Shown: in pieces, positions 6,390-51,040 of the stretch
How the letters are laid out: every line of letters begins with the position of its first letter
How positions within the stretch are numbered: the first letter of the stretch is position 1
NCBI GenBank assembly: GCA_009103225.1
Contig: RHPI01003642.1
Location: 517,116 to 581,115 of the forward strand
Reading direction: 5' to 3'
Source of the DNA: Chlorokybus atmophyticus
Taxonomy: Eukaryota; Plantae; Mesostigma and Chlorokybus algae
DNA length: 64,000 nucleotides
The notes under the pieces: model-generated
The model's input: only the letters and a program-made list of their open reading frames with translations
Database searches by the model: none
What the model was told of the DNA's origin: nothing
Made by a program: the position numbers and the translations under genes

Positions 6390-8902
6390 AAATGTTAAAG
6401 ACTAAATTGTAACAAAAAGGGCCTGATAGTAACGAAAGTTACTATTAGGTCCCTGTATCAAGATTACAGGTGGACTGAGCCACGACAGTCTAGATTAGTG
6501 TCCTCAGGTGCACGGCCGTTGCTAATATGTAGTCGGCCGGCAGGGAAAACATATTGCGACGAGCATACACACCTGTGTGGGCTGGAGGGGGGGCTGCGTC
6601 GCTGCATGGCTGAGCCACTGCCTGGCTGAGCCGCTAGGGGAGCAAGCCGCCTGCAAGTGTGCGGCGGTAAGAGGTGAAGAGGGGGCAGGCAGGCAGCTCG
6701 GAGGAGGGGGGGTGGACCACCATAATAACAAAAACACACACATCAACACTAACAACAACAATTGCTAACAACCACCACAACCACCACATTCAAAGAGTGA
6801 GACAAACNNNNNNNNNNNNNNNNNNNNNNNNNNNNNNNNNNNNNNNNNNNNNNNNNNNNNNNNNNNNNNNNNNNNNNNNNNNNNNNNNNNNNNNNNNNNN
6901 NNNNNNNNNNNNNNNNNNNNNNNNNNNNNNNNNNNNNNNNNNNGGGGGGGGAAGGCGGGGGAGAGAGAGAAAGGCAAGCAGGCAGCACAGCACAGCACAA
7001 CCAATTCGCCGGGGCTGCCTGGAGGGTGGGAGGGCTGTGAGCTGTTACCGCTTCCTCCCTGCCGTTGAGAGGGGCACCGCCGCCGTCGCTGCGCAGCAGT
7101 ACCTGTCGCTGTCACTGCTGCGCAGCGCCTTTTATTATATACGGCGCTGGCGGCTGTCATAACTTTTCAAACAGCCACCATCGTGCCGGTGCAACGGCAC
7201 AATGCGCGGGTCGCGCGGGGTCACCGCGGCGCGCGCAGCAGGCTCGCGGTGACCGAGCGGCGGGGCGTATTGCCAACATTATAATGCAATAAATTGTTAC
7301 ATACGGAAATTGCGTCGCGCATGTGCAAAACGGCCGCGGGGGGGCGGGCATTGTTTTGGCCATGTACACACACACACAATTCTTATCATAATGTAGTAGG
7401 ATATTCAGATTGAGTAAGCAAACATCAAATATGATAATTGAACGTTTTAGCTTACAACACTTGTGAATAATTATTGCAAAAGACTTATAATTACATTACA
7501 GTCGTTATATGTGTGTAAATCGGGCAAAAACTTTGCACACCTTGCAAACAAAAATGCATGAATGCTTTGGCATATGCTGCTTGCCATAAATGTGTCATGA
7601 AAAGCGACCTGCCCGCGCCTTGCTGCCAGAGATGACTGCCATCACGAGCAATGTTGATGTGACATTCACCGTTACCAATTGTTGTCATAAGGCGACGGCC
7701 ATTACCGTATTTACCCCGTCAGAGTCCCCCCCTTTTTATACAGTCCCCCCCTCAATTTTGCCGGGGGGGAGTCTACTCGGGGGAGGACTCTATTACCACC
7801 GGGGACTTTATTATGTAGCAGACGTCACCGACTTCGTCACATGTCATTGACGAGTCACGCTTAGATAGCGTAACTCGTCACGCTTTTAACAATTAGTCGA
7901 CGCTTTGCGGTCGACTAATCGTACTAGTCGGCCGTTAGGCCTAGACCTGGTCGACGGACAAGGTCTAAACCGACTGGTGACAAGGTGTCGGCTGCCGAGC
8001 AGGCGGGTGACGCCCGCCGGAGTCGGTTTGAGTCTGCTAAGGGACCATCAAGGAGTCGGTTTAGGGTTCACAATTGTATAGCAGGTGCCGGTTTACGATT
8101 TATAAAACGCGGTTGAGGCACTGGCGGCGCAGCTGAGTGACGTAGCGCTTTAACGTGACTCACCACCAAATCGGTTGTAAAGCATTAGGTTGTAACAATT
8201 AATTACTTGAGTACATCACAGCCAATCACTTCGAATTGGCATGCTCTCAAAGCTGTAGGCTAAAAATACTATCATAATAAAAACAACCTTAACCAATACT
8301 AGCAGTATTGCTTTATTATTGTTGATGATAATATTTTTATTATTTTTATTATTCTTGTCGACATGTATATATGAATATAAATCTATAGTAATAATAATGC
8401 AATTAAATTGTATAATAAAGTCATGTGCAGGGATGTAAAAATATATTAATACATTTTACATTTACGATACATGTATACATTTATCATGAGGATGATATTT
8501 TTGGGTATATTACCATAATGTACATGGTGTGTTGTATTTCAGGCTTATGTTAACATGCAATAGTATCATAAAAATATATTATATTATATACTAAATGATT
8601 AATCTTGCATAAACATATGCACGTGTATTATATGATTGAAGCTCATCATAAGTGGCATACCAGCATTTAATATTTATTGCAAGAGTTTTATACGATTATT
8701 GCATGTTACCATATGCTACTCATATGTGGATTGTGAATACATGTATCATATGATATAAGTGTCACTATTGTATGAGAGTGTAGGCATGCAATATGCAACT
8801 TGAATGCTTACACAGCATGTGTATAATTATGTGTATGATACCGTATGTGCACGTGATGTGCACAATCATGTACTGTGTGTCTTTTACCTTCTCTCTGGCC
8901 TA

Positions 8903-8992
<90 letters not shown>

Positions 8993-9379
8993 NGTCGACA
9001 GTACGGTATTGTCTATTGCCTATCTTACCACCAGTCTTCACATGTGCAATAGTCAGACAGGTTCACCCCTTGCATGCTACATTCCTGTTACATAATCCTT
9101 ACGTGTATAGTATGTGACTGTGGGCGTGATTGCACATTGGCTGTATGACTGTACACATTCATGAGAGTGCATCAGTGCCTGACCACATGTACATTGCATT
9201 GCTTGTCAAAGTGTGTCACACATGTGTAAACTCTATGCAGCGACACGCAATGCGCAATGCCCGGAACTGCTAGTGACTGTTGCTGACTCTGCAGCTATTG
9301 CTATTTTCTTGCAAAATAGAAGCGCAATACTGTAGTCGTGTGGTTTACACTACAATAGCAACTACTCTGTGAGTTGCAA

Positions 9380-12300
9380 CTACTCTATGGGACGAGAAGC
9401 ACGAGCCAGCTCCTCGAAATGCTTAAAAAGTGCGTCCATCGATTGCTTGCGGTTGTCGCAACCCCGCCGCAATTCTTCAATCTCCTGAATCACAGCATCT
9501 GACGCCTCTTCAAAAGAATCGTTTGTGGCCTGTTGCCAAGCCTCCACTTGTGCAAGCATAGCGCCCCATAAGTGCTTTCGCCGGTTGTACATCTTGCGCG
9601 TGCGCTCTACGCCCTTGCGCCAATCCGGGCGATGTTCCTCCAACCAAAGTACCGAGGGCGTCCCAGGTGCTGGCTCACCGACAGCGTACTCGTGCCAAGC
9701 TTGCCGAACGGTCTGAATGGCACTCATGGGTCGAAGGTCATAGCGCGCTGGTTCAGGTATCTGCTCCTGTGATTCTGTAGCTGCGCCTCTGCCGGTGGCG
9801 GTGGCGGTGGCAGTGGCAGTGGCACCAGGTGCATGTGCAGTGCGAGCCTGAGCTTGCACAGGTGGTGGTGGAGGTGTCGGCTCCGAGGGAGTTGCGCGTG
9901 AGAACAGATCGCCAATGGGCCGAGACAGCACATTCATAATCTGACGAATGTCGGTAGTAATGGCCGCAATCTGCGTGGCAACCTCACTACGCATGCTACA
10001 CATGGTCTCCTCGAGACGGCTTGTTGCCACGCGCTGCCACGATGACGACTCGCGGATATCTCGAAGCAGACCGCGCAACTGTCATTTAAGCACAAACATC
10101 ACTCACGACCAACCAGTGGCATCATTGCCACCCAAGTATTTCATTTAGCTTGTCTACGCACCTGAGGGGGAATATATGTCATGCGTGGTTGCTCTGTGGT
10201 GTTGTTGCAAAAAGCTTGCAGCGTCGCTTTGTAAGCGAGAAAATCCGAGCGAGCAAAGATGGGATGACGGCAGATGTCGTGGTCTGGGCAAAAGTTGTGC
10301 CAGTATACCGCCACATCTTGCACAAGAACTACGCGCAGCCACACCAGCAACCCCAAAAAATTTTCTGCGGCAGTGTCGGTTACCGTGCTTGTTGATGGTA
10401 ACGACCTATTGATCTGCAATATATAGCGCAACAGTCAGTACAGACATGCTTTGCACCGGGGATACGCTGTTAATGTTGATGACAGCTAGAAGAACATGGC
10501 CACAATTGACGCTCACCTGCTTGATGCGCTCAAGCTCGCGATCCACCCATGGCCAAATAAGGCGCAACAAAGCCTCTGGTGGAGCCTGCGCAGCATAAAA
10601 TACAAACATATTCATTGGAGCACTATCTTGTGGTAATGCCCCCCTCACTCTGCTCATGTTTGTCATGCCATGTCATACCTTTGCTGCTCTGGGAATGAAG
10701 TAGGCCTCAAGGTCATGCTTGTCAAAACCAGCGCTTGCCAGCAGCATCTCTGTTGGCATGTTCCTCACATATGACTGCATCATCTCTCCAGCCGCCCAAC
10801 CACCAAGGCGTGCAATAGCCATGGTGTTGACCCCTTTCGCATCTGCTGCTTGCGAACCGCTCACACGACCAGCGTGGCACTTCTTCCGCACATAAAGGCC
10901 TGCTGCTTTCTGTGCTTTCTCAATATGTCCATACTGAGTGCTGTAGGAAATGGGGCTGACCAAACGCTTGCTGACTGGTCCACGCAATGCATGCGACAAG
11001 AAGCGATGATACCATTGTTGTCGTGTATCAAAGCATGGCGGATCATCATCTCGGAGATGAAAGTAATCAAACAATGTCAAGGCAGTTCCCCCGACCGCGC
11101 AAACTTGCACATTCTTGTGCCTCAAGGCGCCTATATTTGTTTCATGCCCGTTGTGGTTGGTCTTGCCGCCATCGCTTTGTATCATCATGCATGGCGCTCC
11201 GCCAGTGCTAGCGGGCCCAATCTCTTCTATACAGTCCAACCAGCAATCCGCAAAGCCTGCAATGCACACATTTTATAAGAACATGTAAAACAACCATCAA
11301 TCTGGCGCATCTATCCACACATGCATGGGCTTACCTGCTCTGCGCTGGAGCTCGCTACGTGTGATAGCAACTCTTTGCCATAGATAGTCGCTTCTGACTT
11401 GGGTGTCCGTATGCGTATTTGCCTGCATGAAGTTGACGGCAATCTTCTCGTGATCACTCTCTTTGATGCGGTCTGCCATGGTGCCAGCCTGTCTGTCTTC
11501 ATAATTGTCTCGCTTCCTGCAAAGCATGTTAGACATAAATGCGTTGGTTCATCACATCATGTACCATATACTCTTACCTTGCGCGCTTTTGTCTTTGAGC
11601 CCACGATAAAAGACCCTTCACCTCTGGGATTTTTCGCAAGCTAGGCACCTGCGTGCAGACTCTGTTCGCACCAGCACACATGCATATATGTCACACATGC
11701 ACCAAATGTCACTCGCACTTACAGGACCGTGCACTCCTTCCAAGGCGTGTTGCTGTTCAAAGGCAAGTTGCACTGCCTTCGCAGCGTTATTGAGTTGATG
11801 GTAACTCAAGTTGTTCCGATTATGCATACAAAACTTTTTGAACTTGTCCTCTGTGATGCGGTATGTATCAGCGGTTGCTCTAAGCTCCCCTCCCGCCCAT
11901 GCCCTACAATACGCATAGAACCGCTCAAGGCCACTACTGTATTGCTTCTGCGTCGCCTCACACCTAAGGTCTTTCAGAATCTGTACACAGACATATATCA
12001 ACACGCTTGCACGCACGCAATCACAGCCCCGTCCCCCTCCCCTTCGCTCCCTCTCACATGTCCGCATGCATTCAGTCTCCCCCTCCCTCTCTCCCTCTCT
12101 CCCTCTCTCCCTCCCTCTCTCTCACATGCCCGCATGCAGTCCCCCTCTCCCTCCCCCTCCCCCTCCCCCTCCCCTTCGCTTTGTCCCACATGCCAGCATG
12201 CAGTCCCCCTCCCCTTCGCTCTCTCTCACATGTCCGCGTGCATTCAGTCTCCCCCTCCCCTCCCCTCCCTCTCTCTCCCTCTCTCTCACATGCCCGCATG

Positions 12301-12721
12301 CAGTCCCCCTCTCCCTCCCCCTCCCCCTCCCCCTCCCCTTCGCTTTGTCACACATGCCAGCATGCAGTCCCCCTCCCCTTCGCTCTCTCTCACATGTCCG
12401 CGTGCATTCAGTCTCCCCCTCCCCTCCCCTCCCTCTCCCTCCCTCTCTCTCACATGCCCGCATGCAGTCCCCCTCTCCCTCCCCCTCCCCCTCCNNNNNN
12501 NNNNNNNNNNNNNNNNNNNNNNNNNNNNNNNNNNNNNNNNNNNNNNNNNNNNNNNNNNNNNNNNNNNNNNNNNNNNNNNNNNNNNNNNNNNNNNNNNNNN
12601 NNNNNNNNNNNNNNNNNNNNNNNNNNNNNNNNNNNNNNNNNNNNNNNNNNNNNNNNNNNNNNNNNNNNNNNNNNNNNNNNNNNNNNNNNNNNNNNNNNNN
12701 NNNNNNNNNNNNNNNNNNNNN

Positions 12722-12766
<45 letters not shown>

Positions 12767-12954
12767 CGCACACACACAAAAGAAATTACCTTAGCTACCG
12801 CCTCTCTGTCTGCGTCGTTAACAACCGGCTCCCCATCCTGCTCCCAAGTGCCTCCTGCACTTCGTACCCTCTCCTGCTCCGCATCAAAGTCTTCTTCACC
12901 CGCTGGTTGTTCATCTTCGTGCGTTGCAGCCCGCTTTCGCTTCCTTCCCGCCAT
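9380..12954 (-). CDS. CryptonF-type tyrosine recombinase (NDC10_II-like) with C-terminal GCR1_C DNA-binding domain, ~757 aa, 8 exons
   Basis: Exons 12954-12790, 11980-11723, 11648-11578, 11516-11335, 11256-10679, 10585-10517, 10413-10162, 10078-9380, all GT-AG and in frame; motifs NYEDRQAGT, ITRSE, GGKTNHNG, GALRHKNVQVCAVG, KKCHAGRVSG, LGGW, MQSY, YFIPRA, IWPW, LRVVLVQD, HPIF; GCR1_C-like TVRQAWHEYAVG...WRKG...YNRRK; NLS RKRKR. Confidence 0.9.
12030..12759. repeat. Pyrimidine-rich minisatellite (~165-170 bp unit, about 3 copies), N gap and (CT)n in Crypton intron 1
   Basis: tgtccgc.tgcattcagtctccccc recurs at ~12059, 12231 and 12394; (CT)n at 12722-12759. Confidence 0.85.
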
Positions 12955-14649
12955 CTGTGCAACCAACGGCAATGCTTCCTTGTGCAATAATGTGCGATAA
13001 TGCATTATGACATTGCACCGCGCACTGTGCATGCTTCGAACGCTATGCACATCACGCAACTCGCGGTAAATGTGCTGTATAGTGAGAGCCATTGTGCACA
13101 GCACATGTTACTATCAAATGGCAGCTAGCGAACACACTATTACACATGTATATACAATCAATATGGTCTATGGTCATTGTGCTTGGATGCTGATGATAAT
13201 GATGATGACTTCGGAACAGTGCAACATACCTGTTACATGCCACTAGCATAGATTGCGTCCACCAGGCCTATCAGATGACAAGCACTACGTAGAACAACGA
13301 CGGCAACACAACAGGCCAAGCAACGTCTATCAGAGCCGCAGTTCACTCAACAACCCACCGCCCCACGTAACGCCACTGCTGCTACCGCCGCCGCCGCCCA
13401 AGCCGCCCACGCCGACCAGGAGGTCAAATTTGGTTAACTAACAAGTAAATTGAGGCCACGTGCGGTGGCCCGACCGCGGTTAGCTGCCGGCCGACCGGTC
13501 GACCGGCTGGGCCGGCGGCAGAGGTCCCGCGTTACGCCAGCTGCCGTGTCTTGAGCGTAACTCGCTCGTTACCTTTAAACTCCAGCAGTTTCGGGCGGGA
13601 GGTGTCGGGCGGCCGACACCCCGCCTGTCGATCGGGCACACACATCGTCACCCAACCCGTCACTCACTCTGCCGTTTCCTTTAGGCCTAGAGGGTTTGCG
13701 GCAGCCGACGGTGCGGCTAGGCGGCGCCCAGTGGGCGCGACCGTTAAATTTACGGTTGATGGCATTGCACCGCCAGCCTGTAAACAGACGTTCATTCCAC
13801 CTATATTTTAGCCTTTTACATGCGTCCTTATGGTTTTTAAATGCATCTTATCAATTTACCATGATGCAACCAGCTAGCATAAGTGATTCGGCTGTTGACC
13901 ATGTTTGATGACGCAGTCACTAAAGCGTGCAATCAATTAGTGTTACATGGTAGAGTGGATTAGTTAGTTAGAACGAGGGTGAGTAGTGGCGGCATGTCTT
14001 TGGGGTATGGGGCCTGCCCCGACCTCGTACCGCCAAAAACGCGGCCGTTTTAACCACTAACTGTGCTGCAATTACACCGAATCTCTAGCGAATTTGGGTC
14101 GCCGTTGGTAAGCAGTTGCCGCTGAGATAGTTTTCAGCATCTATTGCGTATCTCTGCAATAATTGGCCATTTCGCTGCCTTTTTCAGCAACGGCTATTGT
14201 CACCGTTGCGATCCCATTCGATCAACTCATGCGTGACCAAATGGTGGCCTAACGATGCGCTTTTCGTTTAATTAATTCTTAACTATAAGATAATTCAGGT
14301 TAGCATTATTGTGATGGTGGTAACCTTGGCATTACATACTGAATGTTGCAGCACGTACCGTGGCGTAAACGTTACGTTGAAGATTAAGTTTTGAAACACT
14401 TAACTGCAGGTTGCCAACCATATTGCACCATATTGCAGCATATGTGCTGCATTTTGCAACACATCAGAGATATCAACATGTATCAATGTATCAATGTATC
14501 TCTACATCTATTAATATTATTTCTGTGACACATACAGATGATCAACATGCAGCCATAAGCGGCCACGTATGCAGAACTGTGCTTAATTTTTACATTTGTT
14601 GGCATGCGTTTAAACAATGGCATGTGCTTTGCACGGCCACGATCATTTA

Positions 14650-15390
14650 GGCAGATCCAACGGTGTAACGCTTGTACTCGCCGCCTAGCCAGTGAGAAGC
14701 CGGGCCGCACATACTGCCGCGCAGCCCGGCAGTCGCGGGTGCCGAGTGATGGCCCGACCAAAGCCGCACCACTACTTATCTCCGCACGTAACGTGGCAGA
14801 AACGTTAGTACTTAATGTATTATCTTAGTACATGTGGGACATGTAAATGTGCACCATGTTGTCCTCAATTTTTGCAATACATACTATATGCATAATACAT
14901 ACATTATATGCAATATATATAAATAATATGTATAAGATTACATGTATTATGTATATCATGCACATAAAAGTACGTATATATACTACTATAGTATCATACT
15001 ATTATATGCATATAATGTGTATGATGCTGTGTATCATTATATAACATATATGTACCCTATCGTGCATGTGTAATAGAATACATGTATGATGTAAGATTAC
15101 TCGTATATAAGTGCGTATTTATATCACATCTGATTTGCACTTATGGTACATATATGCTTATATGTAGTCATAAATGCATATAGTTATTAAGAGCATGATA
15201 AATAAAGTTTGTATCATTCGCATATATTCTAAGCAGTTGCATGACATGGGGATGAGCTTTGGACGGTCGAGATGTGTTTTGACAGATCGAACGGCCGAGC
15301 TTATAAGTGTTGCCTAGCCAATGAGAGGAAGGCGGGCGGCGCATACCACGCAGCCCGGCAGTCGCGGGTGCCGTATGTCACTGATGGCCG
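14650..15390. repeat. Two degenerate ~110-bp direct repeats inside the TIR element
   Basis: Identical 25-bp core cgcagcccggcagtcgcgggtgccg at 14720-14744 and 15349-15373, each preceded by gcctagcca.tgaga. Confidence 0.8.
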
Positions 15391-17073
15391 TCGTGCGTGG
15401 TGCGCGTGTGATGTGTCTTGTGCCCTAATGCCGGCCGGCCGGCCCAATCACACGCCCAATCAGCCGCACCGCTAGTTTGCACGTGTATAATGCTGATAGC
15501 ATGAAGAAAAGAAGATAATATGCATCAAGTGTCATTATTGTCCCCTTTGAGGGAAACACAGAAAGGGAGGGGGGACTCTGATGTACAAATTCACTCCCCC
15601 CCACAAATTTGCCAAGGGGGACTGTATTTGGGGGGGGACACTGACGGGGTAAATACGGTACATTCATCGCAGACATCAGCCAGACAATACAAACATATTG
15701 ATTGTTGCCTCAAAACCTTGCATTTGGTGACCCGAAGTAGCGTCGACAACGGCATGTCGCTTTCTGTCTTCCCACCATCGCCAGCACACGTGCCACAGCC
15801 GTGCGCTTCCTTTCCTCGCCAAGTTCCACCCCAAGTCCAATGCTTTCCCCACAACGTACCCAATCACCGCACCCACAACCATCAACGGTATGTCAACCAT
15901 TGCGGGCAAGCTTGTACCGTCTGCCAAGAGATTGGTTTGGCGCTGTGAAACGCGAGGGGGGCCCCGTACAGTAGCGCGCGGGCTGGTCCAGGCCGCCTGG
16001 CGGGAGCGCGGCCCGGAGGTATTGGGAGTAGACCTGGGTCATTCCGTGGGTTTGCAGCTCGACTTCCTGTTACTCCGGCTCGGGAAGGGATCCTTTCCGA
16101 GCCGGATGGGCTTGTATGCTAATATATGGCGGATCCTTCCGGAAGAAGAATGACACTAACAGGTCGGAAGTTCACGGAAATTCGTCTTACAAGCAATGCA
16201 AATGCGTGTTACTTAGCATAACCATAATATGTAATGAATTCCTGCTTGTCAGAATGTGAAAGGCATTCCACCCTAGCTTTGAGTTACAATGACAAGGTTT
16301 ACACACGTGCCGTATTTACATGGTGCGCTCATACAGCCAGTTTGTATGCTCCAAAGCCATGATCATGGTAGAAACGGATTGCAATATCATTGATGTGAAC
16401 ATTCGAATTCATTTAGCAATAAGGCATTTGCCATGTGCAATCTATCACTCAAGTGAAAGCTGATTAATACGCATGATGCATGACCAACGATATATGATAC
16501 TAGGACATACATAAACGCATATCACTTTACTGCAATATGTGGCATCATGCCAAATCAATGTGCATGTCATGGGACGCACATGCATAACGCAATATGAACG
16601 TCTTGAAGTCAGTGGCATGTATTACGTTTACTATGTGATGCATGTGGCGAGAGGCATATAATAGTGACATTTCAATACAATCTTCATTATTACGCTGTAT
16701 CGCTTTAATAAGTTTTACGTACGGTTGTTACAATATTGATTTGTAATAACAATTATGATCCGAAACTCTCAGCAAGGATTGTGGTAAGCCAAAGAGAGGT
16801 CAGTCTTGAAAGCAGCTACAGATGTTCACTTGATGTGTCCACATGTGAGGTGCTCGACTTGAATATGCAAGTTGTTGGTATGCTACTCCGTCTATCGCTC
16901 GTAAAGATGGTGACTCATGTTGAGCTTGGGGGTTGTGTGTGCACGGTATTCAGACGGTTGTTCATCATAGGTGTCTATTTTCAGTGTTCAATTGCCTTCA
17001 CGGCTTTAGTAGGTAAATGAACAGAAGTAACATTATAGATACAAAGCTTTCAAATAAACAAATGTAATAAGTG

Positions 17074-17463
<390 letters not shown>

Positions 17464-18125
17464 TAGCCATTGTTAATCATATATGAAATATTGTAGGTGT
17501 GCGCATGCTAACATAACATGTAATCACCTTCTAATCATATTATGGTTATCATACGCGTGAATAAATTGTAATCTGGGCAATAGGTGCCACCCATTACCTC
17601 GACTGATAAATGATGATCATATTTAAAAGACAATCGCAGCATGGTTTGCAAATTTAGTTAATAACAAATGATCAACGGCACTCTGTACACTCCATACACT
17701 TGAATTTCTCATAAAACTTATACCTATAAATGTGACATGCTAATGGTGGAATGCATTGTGTATTGCCACCATAAGCGAGGTAAGTTGAAATATCTGTAAT
17801 CTATTACTATCATATGTACCCATACAAAGAGCCCCCTTCCCCCTCGTTTGGGAGACCCTCTTCCCCCTTCTAAGTAAAGACTGCCCTGTCAATAAAACTG
17901 CATGAAGTCAATGTCCTCAGGCCAGGCAGGCGGTATCACTCTTGGCACATTACATTGCATGCACTAGTAGTGTCGCACCGCACGTCATGTGGACTCGTAT
18001 CTAACGAGCATGATCGCCCACAAATATGCTATGTGAATGCTGTCCATCTTTTGCGAACTATGTACAATTCCATAACATGAGGTGTCGCTTCTCTAAACGC
18101 ACTTTATCCGTCACCATCTTTGCTC

Positions 18126-40094: not shown

Positions 40095-41335
40095 GCTGAA
40101 ACGAAAGAAAGAGTCGAGAGCACTGCTTGAATTTAAGTAGTAGACAGTAGTAGGCTGACAAGAAGGCACTGAGGAAAGTACAAAGGAGGCGTCGCAAACA
40201 CCCCCTGTGCTTTCCTGACTTCTTATGTGATGCGAAACCAAAGAATGATGATCCAGACATAGATCCGAGACCACCCCCCTTCTTGCCTACCCTCCTGTCC
40301 CTCCCTCTACCTGTTTTGCGCTGCCCTCAGATGCAAGCCCAGCAGGTTGGCACAGGAGACCAACAAGCACTCGAGCCGTGTGCACGGGGTTAACAACAGC
40401 TGCAACCACCTGAAAGCTTGCAAGAACAACAAACCCCACACGTCAACTCTCAACTCAATCTGCAAAGGGGCGATCACTGCAACACATTGCTGACAGTGCA
40501 CCGACAATTCCAAGCCCATTACTCCTCACCTTCTCACCCACAGCGACGGCTCTACCTCACGCACAAACACCTGCTCCCTTTTTCAACCCCCTTCTCCGAG
40601 GGCGCCCCTCCTTCCCCTTCTTATGACCTCCCTTCTCCGCACCCCCCTCTGCTCTGCCCCCCACACCTCCTCAACCTCTCCGCCGCCGCCCTGCACACGG
40701 AGCGCCCCGAGGCCTTAGGCTGTGTGATGGCTTGATGGCTCCGCCCCCCCCCCCCCCCCCCCNNNNNNNNNNNNNNNNNNNNNNNNNNNNNNNNNNNNNN
40801 NNNNNNNNNNNNNNNNNNNNNNNNNNNNNNNNNNNNNNNNNNNNNNNNNNNNNNNNNNNNNNNNNNNNNNNNNNNNNNNNNNNNNNNNNNNNNNNNNNNN
40901 NNNNNNNNNNNNNNNNNNNNNNNNNNNNNNNNNNNNNNNNNNNNNNNNNNNNNNNNNNNNNNNNNNNNNNNNNNNNNNNNNNNNNNNNNNNNNNNNNNNN
41001 NNNNNNNNNNNNNNCCCCCCCCCCCCCCAAGTTGGGATGGAAATGGCTGTCAACAACCCAACGCCAGCCCAGCTTTAGCACTGCTCTGCTCTGCGCCGCT
41101 CACGTGGCCTGTCTATAGAGAACGACGACGTTTCACTCGGACATCGACGTGACGCTTGCGATGTAGCGGTTGTTGACGTCGATATCACCGGCAGCCTAGA
41201 ATTGTCGGGCATTGTTGCGTCGCCGTTCGACGTTGACAGGGGAGACGCTGCGTTCCATTGGTCTGACATGACATTCGCTTCTGCTGTAGGTTGGGTTGTT
41301 AGGGATTCAAGCAGGGGCGGGAAAAGGGCCTGCCT

Positions 41336-49374: not shown

Positions 49375-50730
49375 CAGTGTGGTCGGTCCCGTACCTCACA
49401 GATGCGAGGCGGTGCAGCAACAAGCGTGTGTTGTGCGATACACACTGCTTGCACAAAAGCGTTGGGACCGTTGGAGTTGATGGCAGTGTGAGCTTGTTCT
49501 AGATCAATTCGTTGCAATCGCGTTCATTGCCGGTCATAGCGGCAGGGTGCAATCTGCACAAAGTAATGTCTACGTATGTTGTAAACATTAGCTTTACACA
49601 CAAATTGAAACGGCGATGGTTGAACATGAAATGAGCTTACGAACAAAATCAGGTGCAAGGCGACCGCTGGCATCGCAATAAGCTTAAAGCCTTACACAGA
49701 GAGGCTGATGACGTTGCTTCACGCTTGCTCTTGAACATGACTTTGCGTTCAAGAGCGCGTTCATACTGCTCTTGAAGAGCAGTATGATCGTGCAATTTGT
49801 ATGCGGAGGGTGTGCGCGAGGTACGCACACCCAACAGTGTATCTCACATCATGTACAAGACGTTTAGTCAATTTTTTGACAAACACAATTTGATGCAGGC
49901 AACTAGCATCAAGCAAGCTTTGATGCCTGCCAGTCCACCATGCATTATCGATGGGGTAATGCAAATCACGAAAATTATGCATAACATGAGTAAAGTATAC
50001 GAAGGTAGAAGTTATGATGTTCTAAGACCAATTGTGTTTAAGGGCTGAGAGCTGTTTTTAAGTTACATCCTCCAAACTTCAGATCCCGAGTTTACAGTCG
50101 TCAATATGCACAAAGGTAACAAAAATGTCCAGCGCGTATACCAATGAGGCTTGTTTAAATGTCGAGCGAGTATACCAATAAGGCTTGTTCATATGCAAAT
50201 GGCTGCCGCTAGCCACATTACTGTGCTTATATATACATATCAACTGAGTATCATATGAGGCTTAAATTGCGTACCATCACAATTTGTTATTTGGCAACTC
50301 AACATGCTGTTGATGCCACCATCGGTACACACATTCGCAATCAGTCTTCCATTGAATATAGCAGCCATACATACCCACTTTTACGATTGTCCTGAATTAT
50401 ACATAATTAAACGAAATTCACTAGCTTACAGCAGAGCTGCGCGAAGCATGCTCTAAGAACAAAGGAAGGTGTGCTCACATATGGTACAAGCATGGGCACA
50501 CACAAGCAAAGCAATAAACTAGGCGGGGGCCAAGGTAGAGCTCTTAAGATGCAACTTTAGGCTAGACCCTGAAACCACAACGGTGGTGGTGTGGGAAGCA
50601 AGCAAGAGCACAGCAAGGGAAGGGGTGGCAACTTGCAGAGCGCAGGGATATGGAAATATAAATTGTGTACATTGCTATATGCAAGTTTTGTACTGTTGCA
50701 AAGCATAGAATGCAAGCTTATGAACACATA

Positions 50731-51040
<310 letters not shown>

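Follow-up and report, generated by a model that had tools for sequence, protein, structure and literature searches.

A putative composite transposon of 7,954 bp was analysed at positions 7705-15658 of a 64,000-nucleotide stretch of DNA from the streptophyte alga Chlorokybus atmophyticus (assembly GCA_009103225.1, contig RHPI01003642.1, positions 517,116 to 581,115 of the forward strand). The whole stretch is referred to as the window, and all coordinates are those of the window. The element is bounded by terminal inverted repeats (TIRs) with a TA dinucleotide outside each of them. The only recognisable gene between the TIRs encodes a tyrosine recombinase of the CryptonF type, combining NDC10_II, Phage_integrase and GCR1_C regions, and the other open pieces of the element belong to no Pfam family. 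The arrangement is tentatively explained by a non-autonomous TA-targeting TIR element, called the shell below, in which a Crypton is nested or which has captured one. The features of the element are the following:

7703-7704, no strand: TA dinucleotide, left flank, putative target duplication
7705-7775, plus strand: left TIR, containing the tip CCGTATTT, two motifs (CAGAGTCCCCCC, ACAGTCCCCCC) and a palindrome made up of a C-run, a spacer and a G-run
7776-8903, no strand: non-coding interior in assembled block A, without a Pfam match
8904-8993, no strand: assembly junction, a run of 89 C and then one N, true sequence and length not given by the assembly
9380-10078, minus strand: exon 8, encoding the GCR1_C DNA-binding tail and ending in the TAG stop (9380-9382)
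10162-10413, minus strand: exon 7, end of the NDC10_II region
10517-10585, minus strand: exon 6
10679-11256, minus strand: exon 5, catalytic core with K, H-x-x-R, W and Y
11335-11516, minus strand: exon 4, first catalytic arginine (TRSEL)
11578-11648, minus strand: exon 3
11723-11980, minus strand: exon 2, weak SAM-like N-terminal domain
12031-12494, no strand: tandem array of a 164-bp unit, at least 2.8 copies with 96% matches, running into the gap and holding five copies of CAGTCCCCC
12495-12721, no strand: flagged assembly gap inside predicted intron 1, bordered by the tandem array and by a (TC)19 run
12790-12954, minus strand: predicted exon 1 coding for 55 aa, which include a basic KRKR stretch, in frame and with a good donor, without homology support
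12955-15587, no strand: non-coding interior in assembled block C, holding two diverged direct copies of a stretch of about 130 bp
15588-15658, minus strand: right TIR
15659-15660, no strand: TA dinucleotide, right flank

The inverted pair 7703-7732/15631-15660, which includes the flanking TA, covers 30 nt with 97% complementarity, and the terminal 28 nt of the left and right TIRs are identical at 27 positions. In the end-to-end alignment the likeness extended over about 70 bp with indels, and the inner blocks ATACAGTCCCCC and GGGGGGGAGT were conserved. Together with its flank, the TIR start reads TA followed by CCGTATTTACCCCGTCAG. The 18-mer of the TIR tip was found at two sites in the window, both at the element ends, compared with an expectation of 0.01. 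The inner repeat CAGAGTCCCCCC is located at 7719-7731 and 15569-15585, and the inner motif AGAGTCCCCCC was detected in direct and inverted orientation in the outermost 90 bp of either end. DNA folding resolved the left TIR into nested palindromes (z = -3.3), and the right TIR was unremarkable (z = -1.3). A hairpin with a 13-bp stem (GACGAGTCACGCT ... AGCGTAACTCGTC) was noticed in a CGTCAC-rich stretch just interior to the left TIR, at 7848-7884. The direct duplication near the right end (14619-14744/15249-15373) has 74% identity over its length, with a 28-nt core that is 96% identical. In the reconstructed empty site, the junction was spanned only by one unsupported open frame of 138 aa, which does not show that both flanks come from one host feature. 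The literature search for the string CCGTATTT returned primers only.

The Crypton gene is modelled with eight exons on the minus strand, and the coding sequence of 2,274 nt (757 aa) is in frame. All acceptors read cag, all donors read gt, and the phases agree. With Pfam, NDC10_II (E-value 1.6e-11) and Phage_integrase were detected at 10676-11269 and a second NDC10_II region at 10144-10431, both on the minus strand. GCR1_C (PF12550) was matched in exon 8 at 9383-10078 with an E-value of 1.8e-07 and 31.8 bits against the cut-off of 23, and a weak SAM-like domain at 11621-12067. The exons were searched and aligned one by one. Each of exons 4-8 separately aligned, in order, with full-length relatives. 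The residues in invariant columns were R53 of exon 4 and K31, H127, R130, W153 and Y162 of exon 5. Ahead of the equivalent of exon 4 the relatives have 90-135 aa, a length which exons 2 and 3 already supply, and an alternative ATG is located within the tandem array at 12067. The predicted protein has the architecture of the CryptonF type (PMC3212892), and the recombinase gene, which is intact and carries the full catalytic set, is apparently functional.

The exhaustive phmmer search resulted in 643 relatives from metagenomes and fungi. None of them exceeded about 42% identity, the best one had about 37% over the catalytic exon, and no second copy of the gene was present in the protein collection. 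The metagenome scans with a 26-base TIR pattern and with the catalytic exon gave no matches. Two relatives, P0007 and P0001, had no long TIRs in their flanks. One observation was made beside this: at L001:5878-8455, the metagenomic CryptonF relative P0007 and an adjacent GCR1_C open reading frame lie between inverted repeats of 18-20 nt based on TTCGTACGAA, which are possibly recombinase-binding sites.

To these features no other transposition gene could be added. No Pfam family was detected in 10 open pieces from the non-Crypton parts of the element, and by Pfam the element contained no reverse transcriptase or other transposition enzyme. Among the 147 open segments of at least 104 aa in the window, Pfam identified the Crypton and host genes only, and no DDE transposase. 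The Rfam and tRNA scans of 6900-17600 revealed no RNA genes. The original prediction, made from the sequence letters, had described matching TIRs with an inner repeat, TA on both sides, and a CryptonF recombinase, instead of a DDE transposase, as the only intact gene inside. These observations were reproduced, the lack of a DDE gene with Pfam for the element and for the window alike.

The same prediction had treated a chimeric element, in which a Crypton hitchhikes on a trans-acting DDE transposase, as undescribed, and this claim of novelty was incorrect. In MarCry-1_FO of Fusarium oxysporum (Kojima & Jurka 2011, PMC3212892), a CryptonF and a mariner are fused; the TIRs measure 16 bp and TA is duplicated. 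Its four copies are more than 97% alike and it was judged to be mobile through its own DDE enzyme (PMC3212892). In a 2026 review MarCry is the only Crypton with a DDE partner (PMC13465315). The element of C. atmophyticus is similar to MarCry-1_FO in having a CryptonF-type gene (tyrosine recombinase and GCR1_C) within mariner-type TIRs and TA on both flanks. In contrast to MarCry-1_FO, no DDE gene was found, the TIRs are about 70 bp long, one copy was seen instead of four, and the host is a green alga. The original interpretation is partly supported: the choice between a nested Crypton and a composite moved in trans is retained, the lack of a DDE gene was confirmed, and the claim of novelty is withdrawn.

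Cryptons are described as having no TIRs, their ends being marked by direct repeats of 4-6 bp (PMC3212892, PMC13465315). CryptonF-1_cRei, which is active in Chlamydomonas, has CACCG ends and CAYCG targets (PMC9977147). With this and the other CryptonF elements of Chlamydomonas, fungi and oomycetes (PMC9977147, PMC3212892) the present gene shares the NDC10_II-type core, GCR1_C, the complete catalytic set and an intron-rich structure in an alga. In contrast, those elements lack TIRs, and their ends are marked by short direct repeats (CACCG/CAYCG, or 6 bp). The ciliate elements Tec1/Tec2, Sardine and Thon (PMC3464196, PMC3212892) are TA-bounded Tc1/mariner elements with a tyrosine recombinase and with internal palindromes in the TIRs, and are similar to the present element in these respects. 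However, the ciliate elements encode a DD35E transposase in addition and have TIRs of 425-700 bp, and their recombinase is not reported as CryptonF/GCR1_C type. Non-autonomous Tc1/mariner-pogo elements and miniature inverted-repeat transposable elements (MITEs) that carry nested insertions correspond to the shell in the TIRs, the TA flanks, the lack of a transposase and the MITE-sized members in the window. They differ in the cargo, which here is a complete, apparently functional transposon of another class.

The element consists of three assembled blocks joined at two junctions:

6944-8992: block A, holding the left TIR
8994-12494: block B, holding exons 2-8
12722-17326: block C, holding exon 1 and the right TIR

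The junction at 8904-8993, between the left TIR and the gene, was missing from the original account. A further gap (6808-6943) adjoins block A. The poly-C-then-N form was also found at 17327 and at 51004, where poly-G follows, and poly-C flanks a gap of 252 N at 40763. Long poly-C junctions were located in four intervals (8904-8993, 17088-17327, 50744-51021 and 40740-41030), and in two cases the poly-C begins exactly at the C-run of the TIR family with the tip CCGTATTT. A fourth end of this family was considered at the 8993 junction and was rejected, as the sequence preceding the poly-C does not match the tip. These poly-C/N junctions resemble gap fills or breaks driven by homopolymers. The conserved coding sequence, exons 2-8, is situated wholly on one side of the flagged gap, and therefore the integrity of the gene is independent of this gap. 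The link between the gene and the right TIR does depend on it, because only exon 1, which lacks homology support, lies beyond.

The junctions bear on two other explanations. According to the first, the short contigs 6944-8992, 8994-12494 and 12722-17326 were wrongly brought together by the scaffolder and the gap closer, so that the Crypton contig, as a multi-copy repeat, would be misplaced or the two TIRs would come from different elements. The gaps and junctions at 6808-6943, 8993, 12495-12721 and 17327 are in accordance with such an artefact. The poly-C-then-N form at three junctions resembles a runaway gap fill, and the sole coding link over the flagged gap is exon 1, which the length of the relatives does not call for. 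However, this gap separates the tandem array from a related CT-rich run, with 85% likeness to the array unit over 48 nt on the far side, a situation that typically leads to a gap inside a single locus. Exons 1 and 2 join in frame at canonical sites. Both TIRs belong to one subfamily, are correctly inverted and are each flanked by TA, and CAGTCCCCC ties block B to blocks A and C. The contiguity of the three blocks is plausible, and an artefact in any of these variants is considered quite unlikely.

According to the second explanation, the element would be an autonomous relative of MarCry with its DDE gene hidden in unassembled sequence at a junction. MarCry does possess both genes, and the assembly does not fix how long the sequence really is at 8993 and at 12495-12721. 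Against this, the assembled flanks of either junction contained no coding trace of a transposase, and the stated gap sizes of about 90 and 227 bp are far below the size of such a gene. A hidden DDE gene is improbable.

The TIR family was also represented elsewhere in the window. The 10-mer TACCGTATTT was found at four sites against 0.08 expected. The tip plan, which consists of TA, CCGTATTT, about 10 nt and a C-run, was detected at five exact ends and one degenerate end, forming three inverted pairs, and the five exact ends compare with 0.02-0.06 in shuffled sequences. One pair bounds the Crypton-bearing element (E1), and the other two bound the MITE-sized elements E2 and E3:

17074-17463, no strand: E2, 390 bp as assembled, left tip exact with the flank TG, right tip degenerate (TCATATTT) and followed by TA
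50731-51040, no strand: E3, 310 bp as assembled, TA on both flanks (pair at 50729/51042), interior with poly-C, N and G17

The interior of E2 contains a poly-C/N junction, an array of the (CCCCA)n type and a palindrome of C-run and G-run. Neither E2 nor E3 carries a Crypton as assembled. Since both are bounded by the same tip, repeats without the Crypton exist, and the TIR family is independent of the Crypton. TA was present at five of the six flanks of E1, E2 and E3, and their target sites have nothing else in common. Such targets are characteristic of a TA-targeting TIR family that forms MITEs, and they point to a DDE enzyme rather than to a tyrosine recombinase. Tyrosine-recombinase crossovers need 6-8 bp.

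The target sites also bear on the possibility that the TIRs are the recombination sites of the Crypton itself. In that case the circle junction would be a palindrome (…ACGG TA CCGT…), integration would occur at TA, and E2 and E3 would be MITEs. The joined ends would indeed make an inverted site resembling lox or FRT, and the element revealed no other gene able to act on its ends. However, the 2 bp shared by the targets are below the known crossovers of tyrosine recombinases. The relatives have no long TIRs, and the described Cryptons have none at all, their crossover repeats being 4-6 bp (PMC3212892, PMC9977147, PMC13465315). The TIRs are highly improbable as substrates of the recombinase.

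The preferred reading is that the Crypton is nested in, or was captured by, a non-autonomous TA-targeting TIR element, and its probability was estimated at about 45%. The shell would be a non-autonomous member of a multi-copy, MITE-forming and TA-flanked transposon family, most likely of the Tc1/mariner-pogo kind. For its cut-and-paste movement it would depend on a DDE transposase from another locus of the genome. An autonomous CryptonF would have inserted inside the shell or been captured by it, and by analogy with active Cryptons it may move by itself through site-specific recombination via a circular form. Nesting is favoured by the independence of the TIR family from the Crypton, by the CryptonF relatives without long TIRs and by the autonomy of Cryptons.

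Several observations weigh against this reading. E2 and E3 resemble E1 only in the first 8-11 nt and the C-run; beyond these the three differ, and they are therefore regarded as related families, or cousins, and not as copies of one. Two assembly junctions separate the TIRs from the gene. The protein collection and the metagenome scans provided no second copy of the Crypton or of the exact TIR subfamily, and the ends of the Crypton itself cannot be placed from a single copy, in which only the TIR ends are visible. The start codon is situated either in block C (exon 1) or in the tandem array that bears CAGTCCCCC. Finally, seven of the eight window sites of CAGTCCCCC, the core of the inner TIR motif, lie inside the element, two of them in the TIRs and five in the array. 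This clustering may point to a closer integration of the gene with the shell than expected for a fresh nested insertion; the pattern was noticed post hoc, and the five sites of the array derive from one or two original ones.

The last point leads to the explanation in which the shell and the Crypton transpose as one unit in trans, as a MarCry-like composite without a DDE gene and with a still active recombinase. The TIRs with 27 of 28 matching bases, the TA on both sides and the fully intact gene are compatible with such a composite, and the inner TIR motif is repeated in an array within the Crypton transcription unit. MarCry-1_FO, of which four copies were moved by the mariner route (PMC3212892), is a precedent. 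The ciliate Sardine and Thon also join palindromic TIRs to a tyrosine recombinase, and the left TIR of the present element consists of nested palindromes. On the other hand, the element was observed once, the analysis identified no cognate transposase, and E2 and E3, the other family members in the window, are without a Crypton as assembled. Movement of the whole unit in trans is unlikely, and equally so is its consequence, a transposase-less composite in a streptophyte alga that has two independent routes of movement. Since E2 and E3 lack the Crypton and two junctions interrupt E1, plain nesting is favoured, or else the matter is left undecided between the readings.

In the rest of the window (18000-64000), Pfam revealed host genes with flagellar Ig domains of the CFAP65/CFAP47/HYDIN type and genes of a Cu/Zn superoxide dismutase, a LysM protein, P5C reductase, 3-beta-HSD/epimerase, TMEM254 and an MFS transporter. 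This gene set is consistent with a green alga that has a flagellate stage.

In the case of simple nesting, which is thought to be more likely, the repeat catalogue of the alga gains an apparently functional copy of CryptonF from this locus, together with a C-run-bearing, TA-flanked TIR/MITE family, the C-runs of which coincide with assembly breaks. If the whole unit was transposed, the element would be the second known composite of a Crypton and a mariner and the first one without its own DDE gene. It would then indicate that, outside fungi as well, transposons with a tyrosine recombinase can hitch-hike on a cut-and-paste machinery.

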